Assembly: GCA_965285935.1 (NCBI GenBank)
Contig: OZ260661.1
Coordinates: 63,612,001 to 63,676,000 of the forward strand
Reading direction: 5' to 3'
Source: Ophelia neglecta
Taxonomy: Eukaryota
Length of the DNA: 64,000 bases
The notes beneath the pieces are model-generated. The model saw only the letters and a program-made list of their open reading frames with translations, did no database searches and was not told the origin of the DNA. Shown one piece after another: positions 6,101-50,751 of this stretch (its first letter is position 1; every line of letters starts with the position of its first letter). A program made the position numbers and the translations under genes.

Positions 6101-9100
6101 TGACCTACTCTACCAGTGTGATGAGTACACCAGTGGGGAGGTGCTGCCTTGGCTCGAGGAGACACAGACTTCTCCGGCTACTAGTGGAGTCCAGCAGGCC
6201 AGAGAGCAGAACATTGCCAAGGTAACAGTTGTATTCTATCATGCAATCCTTCATTGACAGATATGTAATGTCTACCGAAGCAAAAAACTGTGGGCTCTCC
6301 AAAATAGTTTATGTATTGATGTGAAACTGGTCAGTTGCAGTACCTAACTACAGTCAATGGACCTCTCTGTATAATTGACAAACGCTTATGTATGGAGTTT
6401 TTTGTAATATTTCAGGACATGCTGGACACCTTATGTAAGTACAGACAGGATATCAACAACGCTGCCAACAAATGTGAGAATCTTAGCGGCCCCGAGGATG
6501 TCTCCTCAGAGGAGCGCTGCAGCACCCCTCTCTTTGAGAAGGCTTCCAAGGTCAATGAAAACCTGGACCAGGCCATTGAGAATCTAGAAGACACTCTGGC
6601 CAGGATGAGAGAGAGTGTGGTCCAGTGGGAGTCAGTGGACAAAATGAAACTGGAGCTCTCCAACTGGCTGGTGAATAAGACAAGAGAAGTTAGTCAAGCT
6701 GAGGAGAAGCCAGCCAAACTTCACATTGAGGCTGCAGAACTGGATGTTACCCATCTCGAGGTATACGGTTGAATAAAATGGCTTTTCCAATATTTGAATC
6801 TTATGTCTCATTATGATAGTGGTGTACCTCTGTTGACCTTGATCACTGACTCGTTGTTCATTACATTTGCATCACAGGAGCTTCAAGATGAAATCAAACA
6901 GAAAGAACCCACCCTTGAAAAGTTACAGACCAGATACAGTCGTCTGTCCAATGAGGACCCCAGCCTGGCCGAGTCCCAGGTGGGTCCTCTCAGAGAGACC
7001 TGGGGGGCTCTGGTACAGCAGCTGGAGACCCACTTACAGAGGAGACAGCAGTTCTTGGACCATTCTCGGGCCTATCACCAGCAGCATGCTGATGTCAACT
7101 CTAATATAGACCACATAGTTGGTGAAGTGGAGCGTGTACAGGCTCATGAGGAGGACTCCCTGACAGACAGAGTCACCTACCTCCAGGTAAGAACACTATT
7201 CTGCCTTAGTCTGCCATCCAATACATTTATGATATTAAGAAGTAAAAGAGACAATAATTGTAGTATATACTGTACTATATAGTAAAAATAATTGGTATCT
7301 AATTTAGGAAAAATAATCACTAGTATAGTGTAGTATGTACATATATTGTAAGGCAAATAAAAATATCCAAGACACTGCATTGCTATGGCATTCCATGGTT
7401 TTGTGTTAAACCTCTGCCACTTAAAGAACACATAAACAGTCTAATAAGTTGTCTGCCTTGGTCATATCATTTTAATTTCCTACTAAGTGATGTGGGTGCA
7501 TGCTAAAGTGAGGATTTCCCAAACATGTAGTATTAGAGTCCCTCTATAGTGTCCAAATCCAGTGCTTTGACTAGTATAAAAATGTTAGGCTTCTCCCATA
7601 TATTTCACCATTAATTTTCAATTGCCAGGTTTTCAATACTGGGTGTGTTGTAGAGGTTAATGCTTCTAGCTCTTAAGATTTAAAAAATAGTGTGCCATTT
7701 GGCTCCATAGGCTTTGCAATGTGATTCCATTCAAGAAGTGTGAAGTGGCCCACTCTGAGCATACAAAAGCATGTTTGGTTTTGAGTTTGCCCCTTGTATG
7801 CAAGATGCAGTGAAGCATGTTAATAGCTGGCACAAAACCCTACCCTCCCGTTCATGGTTAGGGCTGTACATTGTTACATAGTCAGTAGACATAACCCTGT
7901 GTTACAGTAGTAGTTTAGAATGCTTACTAGTAGTACTGCTGTACCCTGTAGTATAAGGTAGTACATTGATCACCTTAATAGTCTGTGCTGTGTGTGTCCG
8001 ACGGTTATTGAGTGCTGTTTTGTATTATCTTCTGTATTCATCACTTACATTATCACTTAGGTACTAAGAAGTTATCCATGTCTCATAGTATATATGTAAT
8101 TACTGGGTAAACTACTGACATCAATGTTAATTAACTATAATCTAATGTGTATATATGACCCTAACCCTTATCCATTGTGTACTGAGCCGGTGAACTCAAA
8201 CCTGGTCTAACTCTCACTGATTACATTAATATAAAGAACAAGATTACACTATCTCTACACATAGCTATGTCACATGGATAAGTCTTAAAGTTGTCAATAA
8301 AAAGGTCAGCTGATATTAACTGATTCTACAAGCCAAGGAGATTAGGTCTCTAAGCAGAACTTGATTTAAAAGCAAAGCTCATAATTATTCTATTGACAGT
8401 TCCCTGAATTTTTTTGTCCTAGAACTGATAAAATTTAATTAGGTGTCTTGACTCCTTGTCTCATCAAAGCAATGGAGTAAAAAAAAGGGAATTCCCCTAC
8501 AAGTGTCAGTTTAATCATTAGATATAATGATATAATGATATAATTTTCTTAATTATCACATGCCCAACACCATTGTGTAATTATCATGTCCAGTTCATTT
8601 AGCTATTAATTTTTCAACTACAAAATTATAATGAAAGTGCTTCAGTCATACTTGTTTGATACAAGAACAGTAAGTTAGGTAGATAAAATAATTTGATAGA
8701 AGAAAATGATGACTTGAAAGGCCCAATATACTCTTTTTTTTAATGTTTAACAGTAATGTAAGTGATGATACCAGTTTATAAGTTATTAAACTCCATACTA
8801 CCGTTTGTTCTGTTTTGCTTTGACCTTCATGTTTTCTGACTTTGGCTTAAATTCCAAATTTCAAATGAAGCATGTTTGTTCATTTGATGGCCACACTTGC
8901 TGTGTACTATTCTCAGTGTTTTCCTATCATACCTTTCCTATATGATCACTATCCCTGAAATTAATTGTAGATTATCTAATGCATGTGAAACCGTGTTTAA
9001 TCACATCTGTTAACATGCCAGTGCCTACATCTGTTAATGTACATCTTGTATTTGACTCTACACTTACCCCTTGACTGTTAGACACATTCAAAGGAGGGTA

Positions 9101-12100
9101 TATACAAATGGATTGCTGAACACAGGATTTTACTGTCAAAGGAACAATTGTTGTAATATACAGTATATACATACTTTTGGTAAAGCTTCAAGCAGAGCAA
9201 ATTTTACACCGTTATTCTTTTGTATAAGAATATGTTAAACTGAAGAAATCACAAAATTAACCCGCGTTGAACTGTATAAGTCGGTGTCCTTTTATTGTCC
9301 CTCCAAACATAGACTGGAGCATTTTGTGCCACCCTGAAGCGCTAAAGTCAGTAAACCTTACTACTTTGAAATGTATTTACCAGTCCGTTAATTGTGTACT
9401 GTACAAACAAGCTAAGGTAGAAGCAAAAGATGTCAAGCATTCATGCAGAGCACCTAATCAAAATTCATCATGATCGTCAAGTTGGGCCCCTCGATTGACA
9501 ACATGAGCTGTGAGCGTAGACTAAGACGGTATGAATGGCAGGCAGTTACCTGGATCAATACTCCCACTACAGGCCCAGACAGGCTTAGGTCTGGCTTAAC
9601 CCAGCCAGTTCAGTCATAAACAATGCACGTTACCAGGCTGAGGGCCATTTGAACAGAACGGTTCCTTGCTGGGCTACTTGCTGCTAATACTATTGTTATT
9701 TAAACTTATTAGGCCAAAGGATTTCAAAACATACAGACCTACATGGATGTCCATGATTATAATGAGAATCTAGCTGATGAGCAACTGACACTAACTTGAA
9801 ACAGTAAAAATAATGTCAAATTGCTGTAGAGCCAGTGGCAGATAGATGGCCTGAGTTAATGGCCGATGTTCTTATACTTGCTGATCACTTGAGAGATGTC
9901 AATGTTATGACAGTTTTCCGTCCAAAGACACCAGTAGTAGGAATCGTAATTGGATTTTTCCGCATACATCCATGGCAGGATAGCTATTTATGAACCAGTG
10001 GATTAACAAAGTAACAGGTATGTTTAAGTGGTTTATAAATCAATTATTTGATAATTTGTCTATGCAGGTTGTAACACTACTTTTTTTGCTCTCTACTGAA
10101 GATGTTCAAAGTATTACTTTGCATGGAGCTGTGTTTTTATGAATAAATTTTCTTCTTCAAAATTAATATTCAAGATAAGACATGAAAAAATGAGGTAATT
10201 GACTGACATGAAATCTTCTTGATTTGTAAAGTACAATTGGAGGATTATCACAGTTGTTTTTGATTCCTGACCTTTATAATTTGACCTTTTCAATATATTT
10301 TGGCTGATCATATTCACCAAATCAGATTCAAACTTTGATCTTTAGACAATTCTTACCATAGTTGTGTGAGATACTTTTTACATAAAGGACTTTAGTGTTT
10401 TTCATACCATTTATTTGCTATATGGCTTTCAATGAGCTTTTGAAGTGTTAAAAACTATGTTTCCTAATATTGTGAAAGAATTCAGTTGATTGTATATTAT
10501 ATAAAAAAAAAACACTCGTGTGTGAGTTAAGTTTACACATTAGTCCGCCTTTTTGAACCTTTTCAGCTGATATCAAAAGAAGTAATTGGTACTCTTGGTT
10601 CTATGTGGGGTAGAATGTCTTACTTAACAAGATGGGACTATTCCTCAGGAATTGAATACATGAACTGCAAAAAAGGCTTACAAATTTAGAGCCATTAGAG
10701 ATAAACCAGCCTATATGTTTCTAGGAGATCAATAAGTTGATAGTGCATGAAGTTAGTAAGCTATATCACATAGCTCTCTACTGGTAGGGGGGTATGACAA
10801 GCATTGAACACGAGTTTGACAACATCACCTTATATATCACCAAGCTACTGTATACTTGTATGTCAGATCAACAATGTGCAGTTGGAAGTAATTCACCTGA
10901 CTTATAAATATAACTGGTGCTCCTCATAGCATGTTTACAATCAAATGCCTTACCCATTCACCATTACCCAGCAGAACTAACCAGCTTATACTTCTAACCA
11001 ATTCAAAAATCACTGTGTAACTAATCTGGAGAAAATCTCAAGTCTCACATTCTCTGTTGTCTTACAATACCCATTGCTTTTTGGCTTTCAGCTTTACTGG
11101 GGCTTATTCATGCCTTTTGAAGCAGAATACAACTATATATTTATTCTGTTCCAAGTATTGACCTGCTTGTAGTTGGGGCTCATTTGGCCTATTGGGCTAG
11201 TCAGACTGGACAAGTTTTTCAGGGAAGTTTTGGCAAATGGGATACCTGATCCAACAAAATGAGGGCAAACATAAAAGGGATTCTTCGGAAGTCGAAAGTG
11301 GTAGGATTTTATGTGAAGTGTGTTATGCAATGTTTGTAAGACAAAGTGTTTTATACGACCTCTAAGTACAAACTAACATGTATAATAACTCACTTAACCA
11401 TTCTCACATGTGTAGTGAAGTCTAACACACATATTACATATTAATAACATATTAATTTATACAAGCTTAACATATCTACCATATAGAATACTCTAGTTTT
11501 GTAGAAGTAGATTTGTATAATACTAAAAATTAATTGTTTCTCTATGTACAAAGAACTATACAGTATAGGTTTATTTGCAATGTGGAATAAATTTGAGTAT
11601 TGCCCCAATGGTTTAACCAAACTGTACCCTAACTCTCGGCAAAGAAACTAGCTTGTGCTTTTGCTGTAAACTTTAAAACATCAAACTGCTCAACTTCCTG
11701 TAAGAGAAGTCCATGCCATCTTTAGATAAGTCCTTTTCATTGATTAGCTAACTTGTATTAAATAACCAGCATAGTTTGAGATTAACCAACTGCACATTGT
11801 TGAAACTATCGTCAATTATATGTAGCATAGATGACATTCAAAGATTAATCTCTATACCATTCATGAACAGACATGTTTCTCAGTTAATTGTTCTTATCAT
11901 GGGAAAAGAACCAATTGATGTTTTGCAAATCTGGCCATAAACATCATGTTATCAAGTACTAGTCATTACAGGTATAATCAAAAAGCTCCAAAGATATTTT
12001 GAATTACTTAGATATAGCTTACACATAAAATGGCACATGGCCGCAAAAGGGGCTCCTTGGAAATAACTAGGAGTGGGAACTGTGGTGTTGTCAAGAAAAT

Positions 12101-15100
12101 TTGCAAGCAATACTTCCTGAGAAATTCCCAACTTATCAGTGACAATGAAAGTGTTGATTAACAAACAGTAACATAATTGATGCATATAAGAAATGTTGGT
12201 TGATATGTATATGATTAATATGGGTAGAGTTATTAGTCACACCATATTTTTTGATATCAGGTATTTGCTCACATTCAAAATAAACTCTGGCTAGTTTGCA
12301 CTGAAAAAATATATCTGTGTAGGTGGTTCAATAATTTAAATGTGATGTTCATTATCTGCCCCTGCACTGTTTTCTTGGACAGAATAACTTTGCATTAAAT
12401 GATTGAAGACTTGTCTGACTATTGTAGTTGAGGTATTGACTTTAGAGAAAAGTACATAATTCATGTACCACCACGAGGTGAGTTATCTTTTTGCCCAGTG
12501 TGTACTTGAGTTAAAATGGGCGGTTGAACATGAAAAGAAAATATCTGTAAATATAGCCTAGCCAACTTTGTAGATGATAATGTTTACACAGTTGTTGTTC
12601 AAAGTACAAGAATTTATGGGCCTTACAAGGGTTTCTATGATATAGGTACTCCAAACATCACAGGTATTATACAGATGGTGTTACCAGTAAACCCAATGAG
12701 TGGATGACTTACTAGGAGCCATGTCCAATGAATACATGTTAAATAGTTAAATAGATTGTGAGATTCAGTAGTGTGTTTTTCTCTGATCACTGAATTGGTC
12801 TCTAATGCATTTCATAGATTATTATAGCAAGAGAATACAAGATACATGCTTCTGACATAGGTCCTGTAGAATTGCTTTATACTGAAAAAAAAGTGAAAGC
12901 TTATTTAGTGTTATAATAGGCCTTCATCAAATCAAAGAGCTCGCATGCTTTGAATTTACAAATCAGCTTTCATCACTTTGACAGTGGTTGTGGAGTACAG
13001 TTGATAGGATTAGACAACCAACAGCCTTTTAGTGAAACCTTCTCCTAGTGTAAGAGGTGTTTGACCTTATCTCGGTGAATGTCATGTGTGGAACTTGACT
13101 GATATCATAATATATGTGAGCAAATCCTGATATCTTGGTGTTGATATTGATGTATGTACTTCAAAATCTTGTAATAAACCTATGTCTTACACTGAGGTTA
13201 ATTAACATACATATTTATTTTTTCTTATTTAGGGAGGAGGCAACAGTGTCAGTTTTCAGGAACCATTGGGATTTTCTAGAGATTTTTCAACACAGACTCC
13301 ATCCAGTACACATCGAAGGCCAGAGTCTGCTCCAAATCCTCGTAAAAGGAACTCATCCACTGGGAAGAGCTCACCAAGCCGTATTCCCAGACCTGCAAGT
13401 AGTCGCTCACCATCAGCTTCTCCAGATAGGAACAAATCAAATTCCCCTCAGCGCAGTAAAATACCTAGACGACTTAGCAATACCTCAGCCCACTCTAGGT
13501 CACCCAGTAGGTCACCGGTTAGACCCAAATCTAGGTCACCCAGACCTAGCCCCAGAGGAGTTAACAGAAGTCCATTCAGAGGGCAAGGTGATGACAAACC
13601 ACAGCCACCTGGTGCAGGTGGAGCTATAGCTAAATATCCTGTCAAATCTGACCTTACTGGGACAGCTACTGCTGGTAACCGCAGGAAACTACCAGATATT
13701 ACCAGAAACGGGCAAGGCCAGACAAACAGAACTGTAAGTACTGGACCAAAGTTTAAGAGTCCAAGCAGGACATCAGACCACTCTGTGTCACCTGGTAGAA
13801 GTAGAAGCGACTCCCTTATTCCCAGAAGAACCAACTCGCCAGCCAGCAGGAGAAGTGTAGACAGTGGACGCTCCTCTCCAAGATCTGTAAGATCATCAAG
13901 ATCGGCAACTAGGCATCCTCGAAAATTGCCTAGACCAGGTAGCAGTGCCACTTGTGCTGCAGGAGACTGGGAAACTGATGATTCTGAATCTGGCTATGGC
14001 GATATTATTCATGCTGTGGGCACAGATCATCAGTCTGAAGATGACATAGCTCTTATTCCAAGCCTTGAACAAGATCCATCAAATAGGTCTTGTACTATAG
14101 TTGAGGTTCAGCCAGAACATTTCTTTTCAGCAGGAGCTCAGGGACCATATGAAACGAGAGGAGTGACATTTGCTGAGCATGAGAATATTACTATAAGACC
14201 CTTGGCACAAGTGTACATAACAACTGATGAGTCTTCTGATGAGTTAGCAGTGCCAATACTACATGCCAGCAACAGCAACAGTTCCCTTCAAACTTCTCAG
14301 GATGATGTATTACAGGCTGTTCTGGAAGCTGACAGAGCAATGCAAGAAATGATGGCATCAGGAGCAGCAGCATCTCAGTTTAGAATACAAGCTAGTGATA
14401 CAGATAGTTGGTACAGGAACCCTACTGAAGGAGTGACTGTAGAGAATGGAGAGCCAGTGAGGGTACTCCTGCTCGACCATGAGGCCCAAACGTCTTCTCT
14501 GACCGACTCAGCTAAACAGGCACTTAAAAAACCAGCATCAGGTCAGCAAAGTTCTGGAACCATGAACAGTGGTCAGCAGTGGAATACACCTGAACCAACA
14601 CTGACAAGGGTTAATGTTATATATGACAACAACAGCAATTTAAGACAAGAAGCGCCATCTCATGCTGAGAGTCAGTCTATTAGAGGAAGGTCTTGGTTAG
14701 ACGAAAATCAAGGAAACGACAATGCGCGGAGACAACTTGAAGTTGTAGAACATGAAGTAAATCTCTCAAGACATGTGCTTAAACCTAACACAGATTTAGA
14801 CTCAGAGGATGAAGGGCCACCTGAAGAAAACCCTCATCAAGACTTGGATGGTACTTTAGACAATGAGGATGTTGAATCCTGGTATTCAGGCATCACAGAA
14901 CCAGAGCCTGACACGGTGTCCTCTACATGTGATTCTGGCACCCAGACAATGAGACACAGAAAGACCCAAACACAGAATTTGGAAGATGGTGCCACACAGA
15001 CATCTGCTCACCCAAGGAGAAGGAAACTTCCCTCAGTGCCCGGAGCAGGGTACGACACCGATGATGGAACTGCGAGTGTTCTGTCCCTTGACAGCAGCAC

Positions 15101-18100
15101 TTCAGAACGCAATGCACAGAGAGTACCAAACTCAATGACTGGCCTGCAAGACAAGGAAAGGGTCAGCAAGCTGAAAAGGAGGTTGCCATGTGTTAATGCC
15201 CATGCAAATGACATGATGGAACCAGATAGTGAGTCAGAAGGTATTGGAACAAATAGTGCCCTGATGAATACCATTCAGTATGCTGGCATTAACTCATTGC
15301 GAAACACCAGCCAATCAGGACAAAGTTCTCCTAGACAACCTATTCTAGGGGGTTCGCTGCCCCTACAAGCCACTAGGGACAGGGTCCAACAGCCAAGGTA
15401 TATAAAGGAGTATCAGAAGTATATAGAATCTTTTGAAGGAACAGCCAGTGGTCCTTTCACTCCAGGTGCCTATGAGGAACCACTTGAGGACACTTTATTT
15501 AGGAACGGTAACAGCACTGCACAGTCTTACCATCATGATATGCAAATTCCATCACATCACCAAAGACAGAGAAACTATGAATCAATGCCCAACACTATGC
15601 CACAAGATTCTGCCGGTGAAGCTGGAAATTCTCAGAATATCATGATGCCACAGACAATGGATGCTTTATATAATCGTTCTACCCAAACTTCTCCTTTTCA
15701 GAGGCCTAGAAACTTTAGTAATGCCTCTGATGGCTCTAGCAGGAGGAGACCCATGTCAGCAGGCATGGTTAAAAGTGATTCCATGAGTGATAAGGAAAAT
15801 AGGAGGCCAAAGACTAGCACAGTAAGAAATAGTCAGACTTTAGATGTGCCTTCTTCCACTTTTGATAGGCTGTTTAGTGGTGGACCTCAGTCAATGGCAG
15901 CACGATCCCCCCAGATGCAAATGTCTAAGGAGAGAGCACGTTCCTGGGATGTGATTGATACATCAGATGGACCAGCATCTGCTTACTCTTCAATGAGAGA
16001 TTTTGGGCAGCAAACCCCAATAACCCACTCGACTCAGACTCCGCTGAGAATAATGCTGGGTTCCAATGGCGATGGATTACCAAGAGGAACGATCAGTGTG
16101 GGGGATACATTAGTGTTTGATAGAGACGCCAATGCTCACACAGTTATACAGCCATGGAATGTCATCAGTCCACTAGACCTAGATATTACTGCAGCACGTG
16201 ACTTTGCCACTCAGACCTTTGGACAGATGCATAACATGTCTCATTTACATGTTCAAACTCAAACTCAGGAGAGTGGTATCTCAAGGGTCAACACAAACAG
16301 TGGGTCTAACTTGACTGTCAACACAGACAGAGGATTTACATTGGAGGCGGCAGACAGACATTACTCTCCAATGCATGCATTCAATGAATTTGAAAGGCAA
16401 ACAACTCCAAGGCTCCTACAGCAGCCACCAGTAACAGAATATAACATTCCTCATATGCAGCCAGAAATGTCTCAGAGACAGCAACTAGATGAAATGCACA
16501 GGCAACCAACTCCCTTTCAGGCCTATCAGGCTCCCACAGGACAAGAGAGGCCTCTACAGGAGAGTCACACTTCTCCTAAAACAGGCTTGCCAAAACAGAC
16601 TATTACACCATCACAACAACAGTCAGAACACGAGGAAGAAGAATCCAAAGATATATTCGAAGAAAAAGCCAAGAAACATCATAAGCGGGACAAGTCCAAA
16701 AGATCTCCTGAGAGGAATTATAACGATAAACAGTCAGAAACTACAGCTCAGTCCAACATGAGTCGAAAAGACATATTGAAATTCATGTTAAGCCAGGTGA
16801 AGGAGCTAAGGAGGCAAATTGATCATGATCCTGAGGAGAGCAAACATGTGCCCAGGAAAGAGAGCAAAGTGAAGAAGCCTAGTAAAAGCAAAGAAAAGCC
16901 ACTTAAGCGCAGAGAGCAGAGTGAAGAAAGAGAACCGCTTGAAGACCCTGACAAGCTGTACACTAAGAGAAGAATAGAGCAGATGTACAGTCACAACCCG
17001 CATAGAGGCACTGAGCCTGAGCCTGACAGACGCCACAGGAGGCGCCACAGTATAGAGAGCTACATCAGTGAGAAAGATGATGTTGTGGAAGGCAGAAGTG
17101 CTAATGCTAGGGATCATTACCTTAAATTCATCAGGGATAGATATATTCCAAGGAGAAAATGGAGCCAGAGCCGTGAGGAGCCTTATTTCTCTCGGCCCAG
17201 GGAAAAGGCCCCCCCTAGGAGGGCTTTGACTCCTCCGCCTAGAAGAACCCCTCCACCGTTTTCCAGGTATATTCCAAATTATCCAGGAATGGGGATACCA
17301 ATGGGTAGGGAGGTTCCCCCTCACAGGAGACAGTTACCTCAGGTACCAGTCAGAGAGCGTAGCTTTCCCCCACCACAGGCCCCTCCTATGAGACCGCCCT
17401 TCTTCCAAAGTCCTTATCCACATAGAATGCCCATTACTCAACAGCATTTCATGCCAAGCAGAATGGCACAACCTCCTCCTTATATGGTTTCTCAACAACC
17501 AATGCCATTTACCCAAGGAATGCCACCTGCAGTGCCAGTCCAGTTGGGTCAGGGAGCCTTCAGGCCAATCAGCATGCAGGAGGCCCAACGTATGGGAACC
17601 CCAGTACAGGGAACCCCAGTGATGCTCCTCCCTTCCTCCCAGGTACCTGCCTCCCCGCATGCTCCATTCATAGTTATAGCCAGCCCCTATAGATATGAAA
17701 GTGTCAGTGACAGTGCCCCAGAGGGAGGGGAGGGAATGACTCGCACACGTCAATCCCGCCCTTCCTCTTCAAAACACAGGGATGGGGAGAACTCCTTTAG
17801 TAAGGCTTCTCGGGCCGCCAAGGAAATGAAAAACCTCACCGAACGGCTCCAACGCTCTACTCCTAGGAAATGATTTGGGCTCAGTAGAATAGTACCTATT
17901 ATATAAATGTACTTAAAATATTACTATTTCAGGTATTTTTTGCCTATATTGTTGCTTATCATATAATGATTATAAGAACAGAAAATGTAAATTTACATCT
18001 TAATTTTCATGAATTTCAACTGAGTGCAGACTTTGTGTATTAATGTCTATCAGTTGTTTATGTTTTAAAGCTTGGTATTACAGACTACTTCACCATTATG

Positions 18101-21100
18101 AGATTATTTACTACTTAATGGGTGGTCTTAGGGTAGTTAATTTATACACTACTTTGTAACTGTGGTAGCAGACTTTAACCTGACTACCGGTAGGTAATGT
18201 TTTATGTGGAGAACCATGAGATAAGTTGTTGATTTCTTATTGTGTTAGGATAAAAGTAACCATTTAGAAGATTTGTGTGAAAAATAATTTTTTATCTAGC
18301 TAAGTTATGATCTCTGTTAAGGTTTACTTCTTGTAGATGTGTAAGTTTTTAGTGTTAATAATAGTTATTTACATATCATTAGTTATTTCACTGCTGATTG
18401 TGATATAAAATTCTTATGATGAGGTGCCTTCAACATCCGTCCATACTTGAGTACAGTACACAGTTCCTTTTATGTGTGCCAAACTGCTTCTTTTATATAA
18501 GATCTACAACATTTATTTTTATGACATGATTATTTTATGTAAGCATGAGGTATAGATTTACTTGGGATCCATATCATGTGATCAGATGAATTTATTTATT
18601 ATATTGGACTTAAAGGCTTTTTATGATGTAAAGGCTTTTTGTATATTTGTGCCAATTAATTGCTAGTTAATCTAATTTGAAGGGCAAATAAATGTTTGTT
18701 GTTTGTTGTTAGATGTATTAAGAGCATTCCAATTTTTACAATATATAGTTTTCCTAAATGATTATAATAAACATCAGTAAATTATTCATCACTTATGTCT
18801 ACATCTTTTTTTCTTACTACACACATTAGAACAGAGCAGGTGAAGGCAAGGAGTGTTTTTAGCATAGTTTGCCTCTGCAAAAGGGATGTGGTATGTATAC
18901 ATGTAAGTCTGCTGGTGCTCATTGACTCTACCATGGTAATGAACAGCCACCTGTGAAAGCAGTGAAAATGAATTACATGTATCATAAAATTGGAAACTTA
19001 CATCTATACAAGTCTTGGCTCTCTTACAGTATATACATGTACATGTAAAGGCTAAAAAATCAAATTCAATTACAGTGGTAAGATAACATTCTTAAAATAT
19101 TAAATAAAGATGGTCATGGATCCAAATGTGATCCAGCTGCACAGCTTTGCCCACCCCATACCAGCCTTAACAGATTTTATTCAGTTTTCAAATAAAGCAA
19201 TTCTATCAGAGTCTTGACCTCATGTACTAACTAACGAATAAGGCATATGATAATATTAAAATGACCTTCCCAGATAACTGTGGCCTTAAAATATGTCTGA
19301 TAAACACAGAGACGATACTAACATGGAAAATTGAAATTAAAATACTATCCAGTTTCACCGTTTTAAGCACACCCAAAATGAGCCAATGAAAGGACATGAT
19401 TAAAAACAAGATCAAAGATGTCTTTCCTGTAAATGGCAAAGAAACAAGATCAAAGATGTCCTCCCTATAAATGACGAAAACAAGATCAAAGACGTGCTCA
19501 CTAAAAATTGCAAAAGGTGCCTGAAAGGAAAATAAAACTGTCCTGCTTCATCCTTGTGAAATAAAAAGTGCCAGAGAAACTATTGATTTTGTATGAAGTT
19601 AATGTGTGTATTTGATGTGCACTTTCCCCATGTATTTGCTAATATTTTTTTTCATTTTTTTGTTCTAAATCACAAGCAGACTCAACTACTGAAAATAGTT
19701 TGGGCTTCAGCTTGGAATGATATGCCCATTGTTTCTGATATCATTGAGACAACCCCAATTTTATATAATTTTATTTTCCAAAAACATTCACAATTTTTAT
19801 GAATTCATCAAAGACATGAATATTATGTATATGTTGATGTGGTAGACCTATATCTCTCTTGTACAAATTACTAGAGAACAGTAGAACTCTATTATTAGCT
19901 GATTGACATGCAAACTGCTGCCACTGGCAAAACTCCAACTATCAATGATTTCTTGGCATGACCTGAATACAGAAATCTCCATGAAAATACAAATTACACC
20001 AGACACTCACAATCATAATATAATAATGATGGTAATTATACAGTTAGGATAACTGTAAAAACATAATAAGAAAATCATAAAATGGAAACAGTGTATTTGA
20101 TAGAGAATTACCTAACTGCCTATTTTTGGTTTGTAGTTTGTGAGTATAGAACAGTTACAAACATCACTGTTGCTTGTAACTGAAATAATGGTGCTGATGC
20201 TTTAATAAAACACAGTGATCCTGTCAATTTAATTGATCAGCTAAAAATGTTAGTTTGCCATACATGTATTTGTAAATCAATGGTTAGCTACTAAGCCGAA
20301 TATTTTAGGGATACCCGTCACATTTTTCAAGCTACAAGAATAATCAATCTTGATACCTGTTCTGTTAGTTGCTATGCAAGGGGACTGACTAGTGGCTGCC
20401 TAACCTGAGTGGTAAATATGTCATTAAAAGACCGTCTTGATAAGACCTGGATACAAAGAAGACTGGCTTCACTAAGGAAACGAAAGGTACCCCTGACCTA
20501 GTATAGTGATGCAGTGTCTTGGGTAAGAAATATGATATACATGTACAAAGAGAAAGTTTAGTCTCCAACAATGATGATAGGCATTTGTCTATTTTTTCCT
20601 TTACAGAAACTGTCCAGTAAATTAGAAGAGAGTAGAGCTAGTGTAGATGAGATGGTGGCTGCTGCCGGCGAGGTGACGTCTGCCATCAGCCAGCATGACA
20701 AGGAGCTGGTGGATGACAACATCAGGTACAACATTCCCTAAGTACTCTACTGCTTCTAGTGCTGTGTTCCTTGTATGATAACTTAGTCTGTATGAAACTA
20801 ATGAATTTCACACTGCACCATCACATTATCAATACTGTAATATTGCATATGTATATTGATTTTTCATCAATCACTAGCCATTTTATGACCCCACATACTT
20901 GGCTATTTGAGATTGGCCAGACTTAAGCCTGTGGTATAGTTGACTCGTGTACCATGTGTGTATAGTGGGATTTGAGCAGTTTGCCATTATCTTTTTTTTT
21001 CTAAAGCCAAGTTTCACCTGTCATTGTTCTAGCACCATCCAGCGTAAGCTGGCTGATGCCCAGGAGAAGACTGGGCGTGGTGTACACACCTACCAGACCC

Positions 21101-48100: not shown

Positions 48101-50751
48101 GTTCAATCATTGATTAATACATTTTTATCCCAAGGCATAATATGGGTGGGTGGTCTTGTAAACCAACTAATTACAACATATGGCCTTGGAAACACTTTCT
48201 TTGTATGCCTATGAACAAATAAACAAGAGTAGGGAAAACTCAAAAATACAAGGCAGAACAAACCTACCAATTTCAGTTTAGAACTTTCCTCCTTTGAATC
48301 TAAACTTGATTCCAAATTTCATTTGTAATCTGTTGTGTCATGTGAAGTTTCCCTGTTAACACACTGTAGTTTAGTGAGATGCACATTACAGTAAGATCAC
48401 TGTGAGACTGGAGCAGACGCACCTTGGTGAAAAAAGGGTGTCCCACAGGTAACATGTATGAGGTCAATGACAGAGAAAAATGGCCACCTTCTAATCATTG
48501 ATCACTTTGATTGTTTCTAGCTTGTTGCCATGGCACCTACCAGCACTTTGTTGGGACCAGATCAAGATCTAGACAAGTATATATACTGCTTTTTTCTCTA
48601 ATAGTCCTTTTTTTTTTAATTTTGTAACAAGATTTATGTTAACCGAATATAATTTTATTGGTGTTGGTTGGAATGTTAGGTCATTTACCAGTTGCATGAA
48701 TGCCAGATACATTTTAAGTTCAGCACTAACTACATATAAGACGAGGAACTTAGTTTTAGTGGACATCAGGTAGGGATCAGTTTAGAAGCATGAGAATGGT
48801 ATGGTATTTACATGTACATGTTTCCCAAGACAGTTAGCATAGGGCTTGGTAATACCTTAAATCATACATGTATGTGAGCTATGCGGCTCAATGTTACTGT
48901 GTCGCTGGCCAGCTTCTAGAAATACTAATACAACTGTCTCTGCTTACATTATAAATAACAACTGTCTTTACTTTAATACTAACACATCTTAACTTCCTTT
49001 CTAGCATCCAGCTATGCAGCATTCAGCTTCCATTTATACATTTGTCGCTTTTTTTTATGTTTATTTGATTTTTTTCACATTTAGGCGCCTGCATGTATGC
49101 CAACATCATTTGTGATTTCTGAGGCTCCTAGGTATTATATATTAACAAGTCATTTGGTATTTTCTCTCTCTGCCACATTATCTTATTCCTAACACACTGT
49201 AGTATATACTTTTTTGCAGCTTGTATTTTGTTCCTTAATATGCATGTGACATTTATCCACTCATTCTTTTTTTTCAGTTTCATTTTATATTTATTTTATA
49301 CTGAAGTTCGTAGAGATACCCGGTGGCATCGCATGACACGCTTCTTAATGTAAATGAGCTATATAACTGTTAATATACAAAATGCATTGAGTTAGGCAGT
49401 AGCTACCTGAGTAGATTGCTACCAACCCAGCCCACAATTAGTAAACCAATGTCTAAACTTTCACAATTTAATTTACATGTAGGTTTTAATGAATGGCATG
49501 CACATAAGACTAGGAATTGCACTTTGAAATTTCTTGAAAGTTATGCACCTGAAAGACACATATCCATGTTCTATTTGTCACTGTTGCTTTCTATGTTATA
49601 TTCATGTTGTCAGATATAGATTGATACAAAATCAATATTATTATTAAAAGTTAGCGGTAAAGAAACTAAAACAATGATAGTAATTTTAAAAATATTTATG
49701 TCACTTGGCTTTTAATACAGCTCATATTTTTTGTCACAAGTAGTAAGGCCATTTTTGTAAGAACTGTGGATTCCATCAGCCAGAATGGAAAGAAGCTATA
49801 AGTAAATGCAAAAAATTAACAAACATGCACACATGAAAGTACCTTAATAATTACAAATAACTACCAGAGGTTGGAAAACGATTAAAGCCATGTCAGACTA
49901 TATACACATGCTTGATGAGATCGTGCAAACATGCAAAACATCATCAAACAGCAAAATTTATCTGTATAAACAAGTAAAGCAACAAGTAAAAGTTTGTTTA
50001 TGGCTGATTTAAGAAGTTGTGCAAAAAGGTATGTGTAGGTGCTCACTGAAGAAAACCACAGTTTTAACAAATTGTGGCCTAAACTGCATTTTAGCACTGC
50101 ATGAAAAGCCAAACTCAGTCTGTTGTATGCTACCAATGTCCTTAAGTGAAAAATACATTACACCAATAACAATATGTAATATGGATGTACATGCATGTCA
50201 CAGAACCTTGATATGTCCTAGATATGAAACCTCTCTGGTTTTAAGTCAATTAAAATCAGAAAATGTTAGTTAAACATAATATATGTGAGTGTAAAATGGG
50301 TATCAAATTGTTCTGTTGTCATTTTCATTTTGCATTTTCGAGATTTTGTGTGCAACTTGTTCTCCTCCTCCTCCAAATTACCCTATCTATCACTTTTAGT
50401 AGTTTTGATGCTTTAACAGTCAACATATTTATGTAGTCTCAGACTTTCACTGAAAGCAAGCCATTATTTAAACATGCTCGTGTGAATGAATTGAACATGA
50501 ATTCTTCTTTTTCTTGCAGTATTGAACGGGGCATAGGCTCCTCAGCATTAGCTCGGCGAAGACGTAGATATGGATTTATCGCTAGAGTGTGTAGAGCTGC
50601 TCTGCCGATACAGATGCTAATGTTACTACTACTGGGAGTGGCATGCCTTGTTCCCATGACGGAAGAGGATTTTAGTTGTTTCATTGCAAACAACTTCCGA
50701 AGTTCATTTGATCCGATGTTAAACTATCCGGATGGACCCCCACCATTTTAA
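1..50751 (+). CDS. SYNE1: Giant nesprin-1 (SYNE1/MSP300-like) spectrin-repeat KASH protein, 3' portion; 5' end lies outside the window; 43 exons traced
   Basis: Exons with GT(GC)-AG boundaries join in frame into tandem spectrin repeats. Segments closely match vertebrate nesprin-1 as I recall it (QFQAEIFSRQQILHSII; IEKHSTGVASVSNLCEVLLRDADAC...LDKRWRNICALSTERRMKIEETWRLWQ; LEELNKQYRHLAREGRTD). The protein ends in a KASH domain with PPPF*. Confidence 0.95.
934..1086 (+). CDS. SYNE1: nesprin exon w2
   Basis: ctgcag|SLLANL...QEQVQ|gtaaga. Confidence 0.9.
1392..1559 (+). CDS. SYNE1: nesprin exon w3
   Basis: gtcag|ENIASL...EKWI...IEKHQ|gttagt. Confidence 0.9.
1781..1957 (+). CDS. SYNE1: nesprin exon w4
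   Basis: ctcag|ELLAEID...TQIK|gtgagt. Confidence 0.9.
3040..3212 (+). mobile_element. Probable 3' end of a LINE/SINE (CR1/L2-like tail)
   Basis: Stem-loop ccctcacgctagcgactt-ttac-aagtcttagtgaggg (3079-3115), then AATAAA (3183) and a short tandem tail (ttatatctgaa)x2; this arrangement is typical of non-LTR element 3' ends. Left boundary approximate. Confidence 0.45.
5764..5922. mobile_element. MITE, Tc1/mariner (pogo/Tigger-like)
   Basis: 13-bp TIRs cagtgaaacctgt / acagctttcactg (1 mismatch), flanked by TA on both sides; internal repeated gaccacct motifs. Confidence 0.8.
6060..6221 (+). CDS. SYNE1: nesprin exon w5
   Basis: ttacag|ERLGEVLSKWQQY...NIAK|gtaaca. Confidence 0.9.
6416..6760 (+). 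CDS. SYNE1: nesprin exon w6
   Basis: ttcag|DMLDTL...THLE|gtatac. Confidence 0.9.
6878..7186 (+). CDS. SYNE1: nesprin exon w7
   Basis: cacag|ELQDEIK...VTYLQ|gtaaga, phase 0. Confidence 0.9.
12463..12477 (+). CDS. Candidate internal first coding exon (MYHHE)
   Basis: ATG TAC CAC CAC GAG|GTGAGT, a consensus phase-0 donor; in-frame TAA 6 nt upstream of the ATG; compatible with acceptors at 13233 and 20607. Confidence 0.4.
13233..17873 (+). CDS. Giant 4.64-kb terminal exon (about 1,546 aa, disordered; SxIP, TQT and RxLPxxP motifs): alternative KASH-less nesprin C-terminus or nested gene
   Basis: Uninterrupted ORF of 1,546 codons; pyrimidine tract plus AG at 13231-32 in phase 0; GC content rises abruptly at the acceptor and falls after the TGA at 17873. 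Confidence 0.85.
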   Translation, partial: GGGNSVSFQEPLGFSRDFSTQTPSSTHRRPESAPNPRKRNSSTGKSSPSRIPRPASSRSPSASPDRNKSNSPQRSKIPRRLSNTSAHSRSPSRSPVRPKSRSPRPSPRGVNRSPFRGQGDDKPQPPGAGGAIAKYPVKSDLTGTATAGNRRKLPDITRNGQGQTNRTVSTGPKFKSPSRTSDHSVSPGRSRSDSLIPRRTNSPASRRSVDSGRSSPRSVRSSRSATRHPRKLPRPGSSATCAAGDWETDDSESGYGDIIHAVGTDHQSEDDIALIPSLEQDPSNRSCTIVEVQPEHFFSAGAQGPYETRGVTFAEHENITIRPLAQVYITTDESSDELAVPILHASNSNSSLQTSQDDVLQAVLEADRAMQEMMASGAAASQFRIQASDTDSWYRNPTEGVTVENGEPVRVLLLDHEAQTSSLTDSAKQALKKPASGQQSSGTMNSGQQWNTPEPTLTRVNVIYDNNSNLRQEAPSHAESQSIRGRSWLDENQGNDNARRQLEVVEHEVNLSRHVLKPNTDLDSEDEGPPEENPHQDLDGTLDNEDVESWYSGITEPEPDTVSSTCDSGTQTMRHRKTQTQNLEDGATQTSAHPRRRKLPSVPGAGYDTDDGTASVLSLDSSTSERNAQRVPNSMTGLQDKERVSKLKRRLPCVNAHANDMMEPDSESEGIGTNSALMNTIQYAGINSLRNTSQSGQSSPRQPILGGSLPLQATRDRVQQPRYIKEYQKYIESFEGTASGPFTPGAYEEPLEDTLFRNGNSTAQSYHHDMQIPSHHQRQRNYESMPNTMPQDSAGEAGNSQNIMMPQTMDALYNRSTQTSPFQRPRNFSNASDGSSRRRPMSAGMVKSDSMSDKENRRPKTSTVRNSQTLDVPSSTFDRLFSGGPQSMAARSPQMQMSKERARSWDVIDTSDGPASAYSSMRDFGQQTPITHSTQTPLRIMLGSNGDGLPRGTISVGDTLVFDRDANAHTVIQPWNVISPLDLDITAARDFATQTFGQMHNMSHLHVQTQTQESGISRVNTNSGSNLTVNTDRGFTLEAADRHYSPMHAFNEFERQTTPRLLQQPPVTEYNIPHMQPEMSQRQQLDEMHRQPTPFQAYQAPTGQERPLQESHTSPKTGLPKQTITPSQQQSEHEEEESKDIFEEKAKKHHKRDKSKRSPERNYNDKQSETTAQSNMSRKDILKFMLSQVKELRRQIDHDPEESKHVPRKESKVKKPSKSKEKPLKRREQSEEREPLEDPDKLYTKRRIEQMYSHNPHRGTEPEPDRRHRRRHSIESYISEKDDVVEGRSANARDHYLKFIRDRYIPRRKWSQSREEPYFSRPREKAPPRRALTPPPRRTPPPFSRYIPNYPGMGIPMGREVPPHRRQLPQVPVRERSFPPPQAPPMRPPFFQSPYPHRMPITQQHFMPSRMAQPPPYMVSQQPMPFTQGMPPAVPVQLGQGAFRPISMQEAQRMGTPVQGTPVMLLPSSQVPASPHAPFIVIASPYRYESVSDSAPEGGEGMTRTRQSRPSSSKHRDGENSFSKASRAAKEMKNLTERLQRSTPRK
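18687..18771 (+). terminator. Polyadenylation signals for the 13233-17873 exon
   Basis: AATAAA at 18687 followed by a GT-rich run (tgtttgttgtttgttgtt), and AATAAA at 18766, after about 0.8 kb of T-rich UTR-like sequence. Confidence 0.5.
19402..19511. repeat. Degenerate tandem repeat, 3 x 35-40 bp
   Basis: aaacaagatcaaaga(t/c)gt core in units starting at about 19402, 19442 and 19477. Confidence 0.8.
20607..20725 (+). CDS. SYNE1: nesprin exon w8
   Basis: ttacag|KLSSKLEESRASVDEMV...DNI-ag|gtacaa, phase 0 to 2; not in the ORF track. Confidence 0.9.
21033..21240 (+). CDS. SYNE1: nesprin exon w9
   Basis: ttctag|c-TIQRKL...LHHHN|gtaagt. Confidence 0.9.
21350..21679 (+). CDS. SYNE1: nesprin exon w10
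   Basis: tttag|VLLQEIEAK...EGKK|gtcagc. Confidence 0.9.
21835..22304 (+). CDS. SYNE1: nesprin exon w11
   Basis: ttcag|TLLSEVK...EALN-ag|gtatgg. Confidence 0.9.
22327..22488. mobile_element. Degenerate TA-ended MITE (mariner-like)
   Basis: Left end tatcgtattctttataataagcgccca versus reverse complement of right end taccatcttctatgtgttaagtgcaca: 18/27 identical. Confidence 0.4.
22594..24394 (+). CDS. SYNE1: nesprin exon w12 (1.8 kb)
   Basis: tacag|g-VADTIQKE...LKKTK|gtatgt; several spectrin repeats. Confidence 0.92.
24674..24819 (+). CDS. SYNE1: nesprin exon w13
   Basis: ttccag|DATEAVAQSQPDL...DKFE-ca|gtgagt; not in the ORF track. Confidence 0.9.
25022..25205 (+). CDS. SYNE1: nesprin exon w14
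   Basis: ttcag|g-LQWKSK...MDKQQ|gtacag. Confidence 0.9.
25509..25817 (+). CDS. SYNE1: nesprin exon w15
   Basis: ttcag|ALKQEIK...KEKHQ|gtgtgt. Confidence 0.9.
26030..26353 (+). CDS. SYNE1: nesprin exon w16
   Basis: tgtag|ELLGDVSLFKPKLE...LEEQR|gtaaat. Confidence 0.9.
26730..27035 (+). CDS. SYNE1: nesprin exon w17
   Basis: ctttag|TLVAESNVH...LNAQE|gtattg. Confidence 0.88.
27594..27899 (+). CDS. SYNE1: nesprin exon w18
   Basis: tacag|KVVDEIE...IAEHN|gtacgt. Confidence 0.9.
29027..30289 (+). CDS. SYNE1: nesprin exon w19 (spectrin helix plus about 390-aa Ser/Thr-rich insert)
   Basis: ctttag|ALASQIRSWQSRVDEIN...GRSYQ|gtaatt, phase 0-0. Confidence 0.85.
30600..30683 (+). CDS. SYNE1: nesprin exon w20 (84 nt)
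   Basis: tttccag|WLSSSFRARPSTPLLDELNTSWHYLQQQ|gtattg; supplies the missing spectrin helix C; not in the ORF track. Confidence 0.8.
31666..31836 (+). CDS. SYNE1: nesprin exon w21
   Basis: tatag|VEEKDRQLNEAL...THME|gtaaga; not in the ORF track. Confidence 0.9.
32066..32248 (+). CDS. SYNE1: nesprin exon w22
   Basis: aacag|MLSVEL...QNQLG|gtaagc. Confidence 0.9.
32650..32814 (+). CDS. SYNE1: nesprin exon w23
   Basis: aatag|KAGEDRQK...IKENQ|gtcagc. Confidence 0.88.
33072..33203 (+). CDS. SYNE1: nesprin exon w24
   Basis: ttgaag|LLQGEVSEH...HNLQE|gtgacc (AAG acceptor). Confidence 0.82.
33333..33551 (+). CDS. SYNE1: nesprin exon w25
   Basis: tgcag|DTSQLK...EQLQK|gttagt. Confidence 0.9.
33665..33889 (+). 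CDS. SYNE1: nesprin exon w26
   Basis: NAGNAG acceptor tgcag|cag; QLGNDLTEH...NMPQ|gtttat. Confidence 0.85.
34062..35960 (+). CDS. SYNE1: nesprin exon w27 (1.9 kb)
   Basis: aacag|DFVGRD...LQKYR|gtaaga; spectrin repeats. Confidence 0.92.
36148..36501 (+). CDS. SYNE1: nesprin exon w28
   Basis: ttcag|GLKIDISNRELTVDFVNQS...LKECK|gtaagc. Confidence 0.92.
36611..37077 (+). CDS. SYNE1: nesprin exon w29
   Basis: ttccag|AIQDQM...AKE-ag|gtaagt. Confidence 0.92.
37285..37477 (+). CDS. SYNE1: nesprin exon w30
   Basis: tacag|a-WHRL...NNAR|gtaggc. Confidence 0.9.
37652..38284 (+). CDS. SYNE1: nesprin exon w31
   Basis: ccctag|SLQAAV... (alternative in-frame acceptor at 37661) ...HIYN|gtaagt. Confidence 0.88.
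38440..38766 (+). CDS. SYNE1: nesprin exon w32
   Basis: cacag|QFQAEIFSRQQILHSII...NNCK|gtaagt. Confidence 0.93.
40200..40520 (+). CDS. SYNE1: nesprin exon w33
   Basis: ttttag|ASQKDF...LQLCT|gtaagt. Confidence 0.92.
40673..40987 (+). CDS. SYNE1: nesprin exon w34
   Basis: catag|EYESAF...KIQH|gtaagt. Confidence 0.92.
41098..41766 (+). CDS. SYNE1: nesprin exon w35 (conserved 'star' region; GC donor)
   Basis: ttcag|EYKDEL...LRKYE|gcaagg. Confidence 0.88.
41991..42509 (+). CDS. SYNE1: nesprin exon w36
   Basis: ttaaag|NYQKKLHESL...RAERQ|gtaaac. Confidence 0.9.
42730..42948. repeat. Diverged tandem duplication, 2 x about 111 bp
   Basis: gattaa(a/g)ctgaa...tgtagtga(c/t)tttccaat...aaactatcaatagagt...agggtatgtg...gtagttttatt occurs at 42730 and 42841. 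Confidence 0.8.
43013..43141 (+). CDS. SYNE1: nesprin exon w37 (acidic linker)
   Basis: tttcag|TSDLDSPDSE...PLVLP|gtaagt, phase 0-0. Confidence 0.8.
44135..44375 (+). CDS. SYNE1: nesprin exon w38 (adaptive domain; LNWED)
   Basis: ctatag|VADDEEE...SLASLNWED...DEP-g|gtaagg. Confidence 0.88.
44634..45151 (+). CDS. SYNE1: nesprin exon w39
   Basis: ttcag|at-GKERW...VRRHR|gtaagt. Confidence 0.9.
45326..45655 (+). CDS. SYNE1: nesprin exon w40 (GC donor)
   Basis: cccag|EFLLQIENRKPVVLSINL...CIKFK|gcaagc. Confidence 0.88.
45795..46022 (+). CDS. SYNE1: nesprin exon w41
   Basis: tcaaag|DLKYDLETAQPRV...GAAS|gtaagt. Confidence 0.88.
46745..46849 (+). CDS. SYNE1: nesprin exon w42 (Ser/Arg linker)
   Basis: ttgcag|VSRVSLDGSEGYQSLRS...KSRP|gtaagt, phase 0-0. 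Confidence 0.78.
50520..50751 (+). CDS. SYNE1: nesprin terminal exon: transmembrane segment plus KASH domain
   Basis: ttgcag|t-IERG...FIARVCRAALPIQMLMLLLLGVACLVPMTEEDFSCFIANNFRSSFDPMLNYPDGPPPF*; Cys at -23 and PPPX terminus are present. Confidence 0.97.

Follow-up and report, generated by a model that had tools for sequence, protein, structure and literature searches.

A large conserved exon within an annelid nesprin gene probably serves as an alternative last exon for a KASH-less isoform with LC8- and EB1-type motifs

The annelid Ophelia neglecta carries, within an intron of a giant nesprin gene, a single open frame of 4.6 kb, hereafter the big exon. We analyzed it in a 64,000-nt stretch of DNA (assembly GCA_965285935.1, contig OZ260661.1, positions 63,612,001 to 63,676,000 of the forward strand), referred to as the window. 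The host gene is a giant nesprin: plus-strand exons flanking the big exon on either side match PF00435 (Spectrin) and PF25034 (Spectrin_SYNE1), and a KASH-domain exon lies further downstream (Table 1). In the Nesprin-1 model of the tubeworm Lamellibrachia satsuma, residues 138-200 are 76% identical to an exon for the CH domain that was found on this strand 44 kb upstream of the window. A comparison taking in 72 kb of upstream DNA showed that the gene runs colinearly with this model (residues 138-6544) from the CH exon to the spectrin-rod exon w7. The big exon is positioned about 55-60% along the giant nesprin, in the 13,420-nt intron between the rod exons w7 and w8. The w7 exon ends in ...CTCCAG/gtaaga at phase 0 (the slash marks the exon boundary), and w8 starts at 20607, also at phase 0, preceded by ttttttcctttacag. 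An earlier interpretation made from the letters alone, here called the sequence-only reading, had drawn the open frame at 13233-17873, the w7 donor at 7186, the w8 acceptor at 20607 and the intron at 13.4 kb, and all of these coordinates are correct.

The frame at 13233-17873 on the plus strand comprises 1,546 sense codons followed by TGA. It opens at the acceptor tttag/GGA, the TAG of which is itself the preceding in-frame stop. At a stop-codon frequency of ~5%, the probability that a frame this long stays open by chance is ~e^-79. The G+C content is 45-47% across the big exon versus 32-36% in the flanking intron. The exon is present as a single copy in the 762-Mb genome, and a contig of the second haplotype covers 12400-18399 at a depth of 28.5 without joints or loose ends. 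The product is rich in S (12.5%), P (9.8%), R (9.5%), Q (6.9%) and T (6.8%), and 77% of its residues are disorder-promoting by composition count. It contains no membrane-spanning hydrophobic segment, the maximum Kyte-Doolittle mean over 19 residues being 0.94, and no tandem repeats. No family was matched in a Pfam search of the product, a profile search of the PDB with the tail found no relative, and a search of the ESM Atlas gave no usable match. Composition and the Pfam result bear out the description of a non-spectrin, largely disordered tail rich in S/R/P/Q/T. A match to a transposon or viral protein, which the sequence-only reading had named as fatal to its proposal, did not materialise: the exon has no Pfam match, is single-copy and is syntenic in five loci.

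Database searches returned ~25 homologues of the big exon with identities of 27-57%, nearly all of which are unnamed open reading frame (ORF) calls from worm-containing assemblies. A phmmer search against 1.84 billion representatives gave 22 matches, all unnamed ORFs except for tubeworm clusters, and a profile search with the tail added one further unnamed ORF and no named relative. The only named homologues of the tail are thus those of siboglinid tubeworms. Further giant proteins bearing the tail were not found when residues 6641-7869 of the L. satsuma model were used as query. The short contigs L003, L008 and L009 were considered as transcripts and rejected, as they are genomic or metagenome scaffolds.

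The sequence-only reading had proposed asking whether homologues in related genomes lie in the same nesprin intron. They do: in four further loci (L002, L005, L006 and L007), the big exon is located between the w7 and w8 orthologues on the same strand. In these loci and the window, the w7 orthologue ends in ...L(Q/E/K) directly followed by gt at phase 0, and the acceptor of the big exon, consisting of a pyrimidine tract and AG, follows 6.0-8.4 kb past the w7 donor, also at phase 0. The phase-0 acceptor matching the w7 donor is therefore confirmed in the window and repeated across the five loci.

None of seven copies of the big exon has a start codon near its beginning, and all seven open at the acceptor. 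The first Met appears 200-387 residues into the exon in these copies, except where read-through of the intron provides one. Synonymous sites are saturated in the comparison of the window with L002; in tubeworm pairs that are sufficiently close for a measurement, the ratio of nonsynonymous to synonymous substitution rates (dN/dS) was 0.11-0.25 before the first Met and 0.11-0.16 after it. Purifying selection thus acts on the part preceding the first Met as it does on the remainder, so the N-terminal part is translated, and the ribosome must come in from an upstream exon. The dN/dS check that had been suggested for this frame therefore came out as purifying selection, at 0.11-0.25 in tubeworm pairs. 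At the other end, the stop codon is located no more than ~10 residues past the conserved C-terminal segment in all homologues. This conservation of the stop suggests that the big exon is a terminal exon rather than a cassette.

An alignment of 21 homologues, from which the motif conservation counts were taken, revealed that the tail is composed of short invariant blocks spaced by variable, low-complexity linkers. The big exon encodes eight TQT tripeptides compared with 0.47 expected from its composition, a number that was reached in none of 5,000 shuffles, and every one of the homologues contains 4-10. The TQT sites at aa 570, 578, 588, 934, 993 and 1009 are each kept in 18-21 of the 21; aa 993 is present in all, aa 1009 in 20 and aa 934 in 19. 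Of the nine T/QQT sites (eight TQT and one QQT), Asp occupies position -4 in five and Pro position +2 in three; both residues are favoured in validated LC8 clients (PMC6607443). The tail thus shows the sequence features of an LC8 client, namely TQT anchors with favourable flanks in a disordered region.

Three SxIP motifs are encoded in the N-terminal part of the tail (Table 1). The one at aa 75 is kept in 15/21 homologues and that at aa 49 in 9/21, and at least one SxIP is found in 17/21. The count alone is not significant, since three motifs compare with 0.95 expected and 364 of 5,000 shuffles reach this number. The surroundings of SRIP and SKIP, with a net charge of +4/+5 and no D/E within ±10 residues, are those of EB1-client sequences; in the work of Honnappa and colleagues from 2009, EB1-binding SxIP motifs reportedly sit in a basic Ser/Pro context. 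A further element, RKLPSVP, fits the class-I SH3 ligand pattern (+xΦPxΦP), and we take it to be a putative SH3 site. The sequence R/K-R/K-(K/R)-L-P recurs at aa 150-154, 229-233, 596-600 and 648-652 and is kept in 8-17 of the 21 homologues; only the third copy fits the SH3 pattern, and the others may resemble nuclear localization signals. Other invariant blocks of the tail are AVLEAD..MQ, QP.Y.KEYQ.YIESF.GT, DILK.ML.QV..L, RRRHS.ESY, LGQGAFRPI and IVIASPYRY.S, for none of which could we name a known partner. The short linear motifs claimed for this tail, that is, SxIP, TQT and class-I SH3-type sites, are accordingly conserved as sequences among the homologues.

Two deposited tubeworm models contain the tail. 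KAK2179831.1 of Ridgeia piscesae has 2,001 residues, of which ~773 form nesprin-type spectrin repeats ahead of the tail. It splices the w7 orthologue straight to the big-exon acceptor that we had identified independently, and it ends at the stop codon of the exon. The Ridgeia annotation was produced using EVM with RNA-seq plus ab initio prediction (PMC9921365). The second model is the "Nesprin-1" of L. satsuma, KAI0212904.1, with 7,869 residues, which consists of a CH domain, a rod of 6.5 thousand residues and the tail as its last 1,229 residues (6641-7869); it derives from BRAKER with RNA-seq hints plus ab initio prediction (PMC10291997). In both models, a tail orthologous to that of the window (~35% identity) opens at the same acceptor and has the same place after the w7 orthologue. 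They differ from the window in that KAK2179831.1 is cut at the 5′ end and KAI0212904.1 has an extra repeat "exon", and both are automatic models. In KAI0212904.1, a 95-residue run of 9-residue tandem repeats occupies residues ~6545-6640, between the w7 orthologue and the tail, and looks like an intronic minisatellite mistaken for an exon. We count the two models as support for the joining of rod and tail, not as proof. Neither genome paper mentions the tail or nesprin (PMC9921365, PMC10291997). The claim that a nesprin locus encodes this tail exon thus stands in that a real, conserved coding exon lies inside the nesprin gene, and the two tubeworm models join it to the rod. That the tail was previously undescribed is true of the literature we searched, in which no description of it was found, whereas deposited annotations already contain it, once under the name Nesprin-1.

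Taken together, these observations make it probable that the big exon is an alternative last exon of annelid nesprin, giving a KASH-less isoform that ends in a scaffold of LC8- and EB1-type motifs. In five loci, it is a same-strand exon inside the gene with an acceptor in frame with the upstream donor, as an alternative last exon should be. From this arrangement we infer how splicing, 3′ end formation, promoter choice and binding may proceed. One phase-0 donor, most likely that of w7 (7186), would be joined to either of two phase-0 acceptors, 13233 or that of w8 at 20607. If w8 is chosen, the rod would continue to KASH. If 13233 is chosen, the message would end in the intron, and the downstream rod and the KASH anchor would be replaced by a mostly disordered tail of 1,546 residues. 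The SxIP motifs of this tail could dock EB1 at growing microtubule ends, the TQT array with six or more anchors could bind several LC8/DYNLL dimers and thereby zip two chains into a parallel dimer, and RKLPSVP could offer one class-I SH3-type site. With the CH head, the product would be a cytoplasmic KASH-less nesprin of ~8,000 residues, a spectraplakin-like linker of actin and microtubules; with an internal promoter, it would be a shorter rod-plus-tail scaffold. Two conserved islands in the upstream intron, at 9552-9739 and 10976-11139, are candidates for regulating the choice of acceptor. The fullest version of this scheme, an annelid locus with two products in which a nuclear linker is accompanied by a crosslinker of ~8,000 residues (CH head, rod of 6.4 thousand residues, SxIP plus-end tracking and LC8-zipped tail), is a tentative proposal that we regard as possible but not as the expected outcome.

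Several points weigh against the alternative-last-exon interpretation. A phase-0 match would arise by chance in about one of three cases, and more often if most rod exons are in phase 0. The AATAAA hexamers downstream of the stop occur at the density expected by chance in sequence of 29% GC. Both tubeworm models come from automatic pipelines that are apt to attach any long phase-compatible ORF, and the dubious 95-residue insert in KAI0212904.1 suggests that its junction was not supported by reads. The only public sequencing runs that contain the region are three contig sets of one sample, the source sample; they look like DNA, and none is recorded as RNA. LC8 fails to bind many peptides that contain TQT (PMC6607443), and the invariant FATQTFGQ has Phe at -3 and +2, which is atypical for LC8 motifs. 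Finally, a very short private first exon could slip past conservation screens.

One rival also treats the big exon as part of nesprin and supposes that it is used mainly with an internal promoter, which would yield a short rod fragment with the tail and without CH domains, and hence no actin-microtubule crosslinker. This is compatible with the splice proposed here, not with the full architecture of the sequence-only reading. Vertebrate nesprins, which mix many internal starts and ends (PMC3388047), and the Drosophila isoform Msp300-PE, which is KASH-less with few spectrin repeats and organises microtubules (PMC11230431), provide precedents, and the Ridgeia model starts just 773 residues before the tail, possibly because of an annotation break. 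Nothing speaks against it directly; the L. satsuma model spans from the CH domains to the tail, and no internal promoter was identified in this analysis. We consider predominant use of such a promoter rather unlikely.

Slightly less probable still is an independent gene nested in the nesprin intron, with its own promoter and a tiny first exon, encoding a free-standing scaffold of 1,550 residues without the rod. Such a gene needs only an ATG and a phase-0 donor, and a mini-exon of this kind is present at 12463-12477; yet it is not conserved even in L002, the closest relative, and none of the pairs of loci compared shows a conserved coding island in the upstream intron. The two single-copy conserved non-coding islands in that intron could be the promoter or enhancer of a nested gene. 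Apart from the two tubeworm models, the database homologues are stand-alone ORF calls, which are uninformative since they are stop-to-stop calls, and a Logan contig that carries 483 nt of intron ahead of the big exon is probably DNA. On the other side, the same rod-exon interval, strand and phases are kept in five loci down to ~30% protein identity, and both RNA-informed annotations join the big exon to the rod. A non-functional origin, as a chance ORF, a decayed or transposon- or virus-derived insert, or a "poison" exon, could appeal to the lack of a Pfam, PDB or Atlas relative and to the low-complexity composition, but is effectively excluded by conservation: the frame of 1,546 codons is open in at least seven loci, with dN/dS of 0.11-0.25, invariant motif blocks and a single copy.

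CPG2 and KLNes1g are KASH-less nesprin variants in vertebrates. The KASH-less variants of vertebrate nesprin-1 and -2 arise via alternative 3′ ends, in genes where internal starts and ends are numerous (Rajgor et al. 2012, PMC3388047). The annelid isoform predicted by an alternative last exon would be similar in that it belongs to the same family, its transcript ends within the gene, KASH is lost and the product would act away from the nuclear envelope. In contrast, the vertebrate ends consist of retained intron that immediately follows the last coding exon, and they contribute few residues or none (PMC3388047), whereas the worm end would be a separate exon, spliced in from 6 kb inside the intron, with 1,546 conserved residues and its own motif set.

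In Drosophila, Msp300-PE, which lacks KASH and has few spectrin repeats, forms the perinuclear microtubule-organising centre together with Shot and Patronin (PMC11230431), and Msp300 acts with the separate proteins Shot and EB1 on muscle nuclei (PMC4442817). The likeness to the predicted worm isoform lies in an isoform of a nesprin locus with a large non-spectrin part, a microtubule-related role and a functional tie to EB1 and a spectraplakin. However, Msp300-PE contains ~100-residue tandem repeats of two families, predicted to be beta sandwiches, and a C-terminal membrane helix, neither of which is present in the worm tail, and no sequence similarity between the two was found. Moreover, EB1 is recruited in flies by Shot and not by nesprin motifs.

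The spectraplakins MACF1/ACF7 and Shot resemble the predicted long isoform in having N-terminal CH domains, a long spectrin rod and a C-terminal tail with SxIP. The worm protein does not belong to this family: its tail has no plakin, EF-hand or GAR domain in Pfam, its rod is of the nesprin type (Spectrin_SYNE1) and its gene encodes KASH. By analogy, the long isoform may work like a spectraplakin without being one. Like multivalent LC8 clients such as ASCIZ, Nup159 and Chica, the worm tail has many TQT motifs in a disordered chain, several of them with Asp at -4 and Pro at +2; these putative LC8 sites are grouped in twos and threes at spacings of 8-16 residues. The worm tail differs from such clients in having no homology to any known one and an invariant site with atypical Phe flanks. 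Among the papers listed in full-text literature searches, none combined nesprin with LC8 or TQT, and none combined it with SxIP.

The alternative ends of the KASH-less nesprins known so far contribute little or nothing of their own, whereas the end predicted for this worm is a large module under strong conservation, whose motifs suggest contact with microtubule plus ends and dimerisation by LC8. If the splice is real, one locus would toggle between nuclear anchoring and cytoskeletal cross-linking via two acceptors 7 kb apart, which would offer a clean setting in which to study how a giant gene selects its last exon, and a testable nesprin that recruits EB1 and LC8 directly, as opposed to via a spectraplakin partner as in flies. 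If the two-product crosslinker is also true, it would represent an independent evolutionary route to actin-microtubule crosslinking and the first nesprin to carry docking sites for EB1 and LC8 of its own.

Table 1. Features of the nesprin locus, given in window coordinates
Feature	Position	Strand	Details
Spectrin-rod exon w7, 103 codons, phase-0 donor CAG/gtaaga	6878..7186	+	Most likely splice partner of the big exon; orthologue ends similarly in L002, L005, L006, L007
Conserved non-coding island 1, upstream intron	9552..9739	.	70% identity over 189 nt to L002; stops in all frames
Conserved non-coding island 2, upstream intron	10976..11139	.	71% identity over 166 nt to L002
Candidate private start exon, ATG + 4 codons, then GTGAGT; not supported	12463..12477	+	Sequence present, conservation absent
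Polypyrimidine tract + AG acceptor of the big exon, phase 0	13213..13232	+	Equivalent phase-0 acceptor ahead of the first conserved residues in 7/7 loci
Probable alternative terminal coding exon (big exon), 1,546 codons + TGA	13233..17873	+	Homologues 28-57% identical; dN/dS 0.11-0.25 in tubeworm pairs; single copy
N-terminal TQT, aa 20-22, D at -4, P at +2	13290..13298	+	Kept in 13/21; several others are N-terminally truncated ORF calls
SxIP pair, SRIP aa 49-52 and SKIP aa 75-78	13377..13466	+	Basic Ser/Pro-rich stretch without acidic residues
Third SxIP, SLIP aa 194-197	13812..13823	+	Sequence
Triple TQT cluster, aa 570, 578, 588	14940..15002	+	Each site in 18/21 homologues
RKLPSVP, aa 597-603	15021..15041	+	R/K-R/K-L-P core in 17/21 homologues
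Second motif block: QQT aa 926, TQT aa 934, FATQTFGQ aa 991-998, TQT aa 1009	16008..16265	+	21-homologue alignment
Conserved C-terminal segment, aa 1523-1540, stop 6 residues on	17799..17852	+	Consensus ATRAA..MK.LT..L
Stop codon TGA	17871..17873	+	End of the big-exon frame
First two AATAAA after the stop, candidate poly(A) signals (18687-18692, 18766-18771)	18687..18771	+	814 and 893 nt past the stop
Start of rod exon w8, competing phase-0 acceptor toward the KASH isoform	20607..20716	+	Sequence, locus comparison
KASH-domain exon of the host gene	50575..50748	+	PF10541, 93.2 bits, E 9.8e-24; left out of any transcript that ends in the big exon

The mini-exon at 12463-12477 was rejected as a likely start, as neither DNA- nor protein-level conservation was found with L002 or any other locus. 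The private start exon ending at 12477 that the sequence-only reading had offered as an option is therefore not upheld by any locus compared. When the upstream introns were searched against each other using tblastx, no conserved coding island was detected in any pair. The two non-coding islands in this intron have stops in all frames, are unique in the genome and are not repeats, and an Rfam search of both gave no match. They are matched in L002 only, the closest relative, despite the saturation of synonymous sites, and were not detected in more distant loci. The islands are candidate regulators of last-exon choice or candidate elements of an internal promoter.

As to the own 3′ end claimed for the big exon, the stop is conserved, and the hexamers at 18687 and 18766 are present but at chance frequency. 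No A[AT]TAAA hexamer occurs in 17874-18686, the first 813 nt past the stop, compared with ~3 expected at 29% GC. L002 is likewise free of A[AT]TAAA in the first 694 nt past the stop, and its first two hexamers lie 695 and 740 nt past it. The hexamer-free stretch after the stop is a weak hint that a protected 3′ untranslated region may follow the exon.

The second haplotype differs from the window at 11 sites in 15047-17859, all within the final 3 kb of the exon; the 526 nt that follow the stop show no difference. The allelic differences comprise 4 synonymous and 7 non-synonymous changes, too few for an inference on selection.

Automatic annotation splits or truncates annelid nesprin at the big exon, as seen in three Ridgeia models and in the L. 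satsuma "Nesprin-1" without KASH. At the Ridgeia locus L007 (JAODUO010000470.1, 220124-258161), one nesprin is divided into three consecutive models of 956+, 2,001 and 4,681+ aa. The middle model stops at the stop codon of the big exon, and the third holds the remaining rod and KASH.

The O. neglecta genome contains two intronless, full-length LC8/DYNLL genes, L010:1498-1764 (-) on C12 and L011:1498-1764 (-) on C7. Their products have 89 residues each and differ only at position 56 (C/V); a third, partial match is located on C8. Two more KASH-domain exons were found at C2:69968131-69968298 (-) and C1:86202774-86202932 (-), with no copy of the big exon at either locus. Together with the host nesprin, the genome thus has at least three KASH genes.

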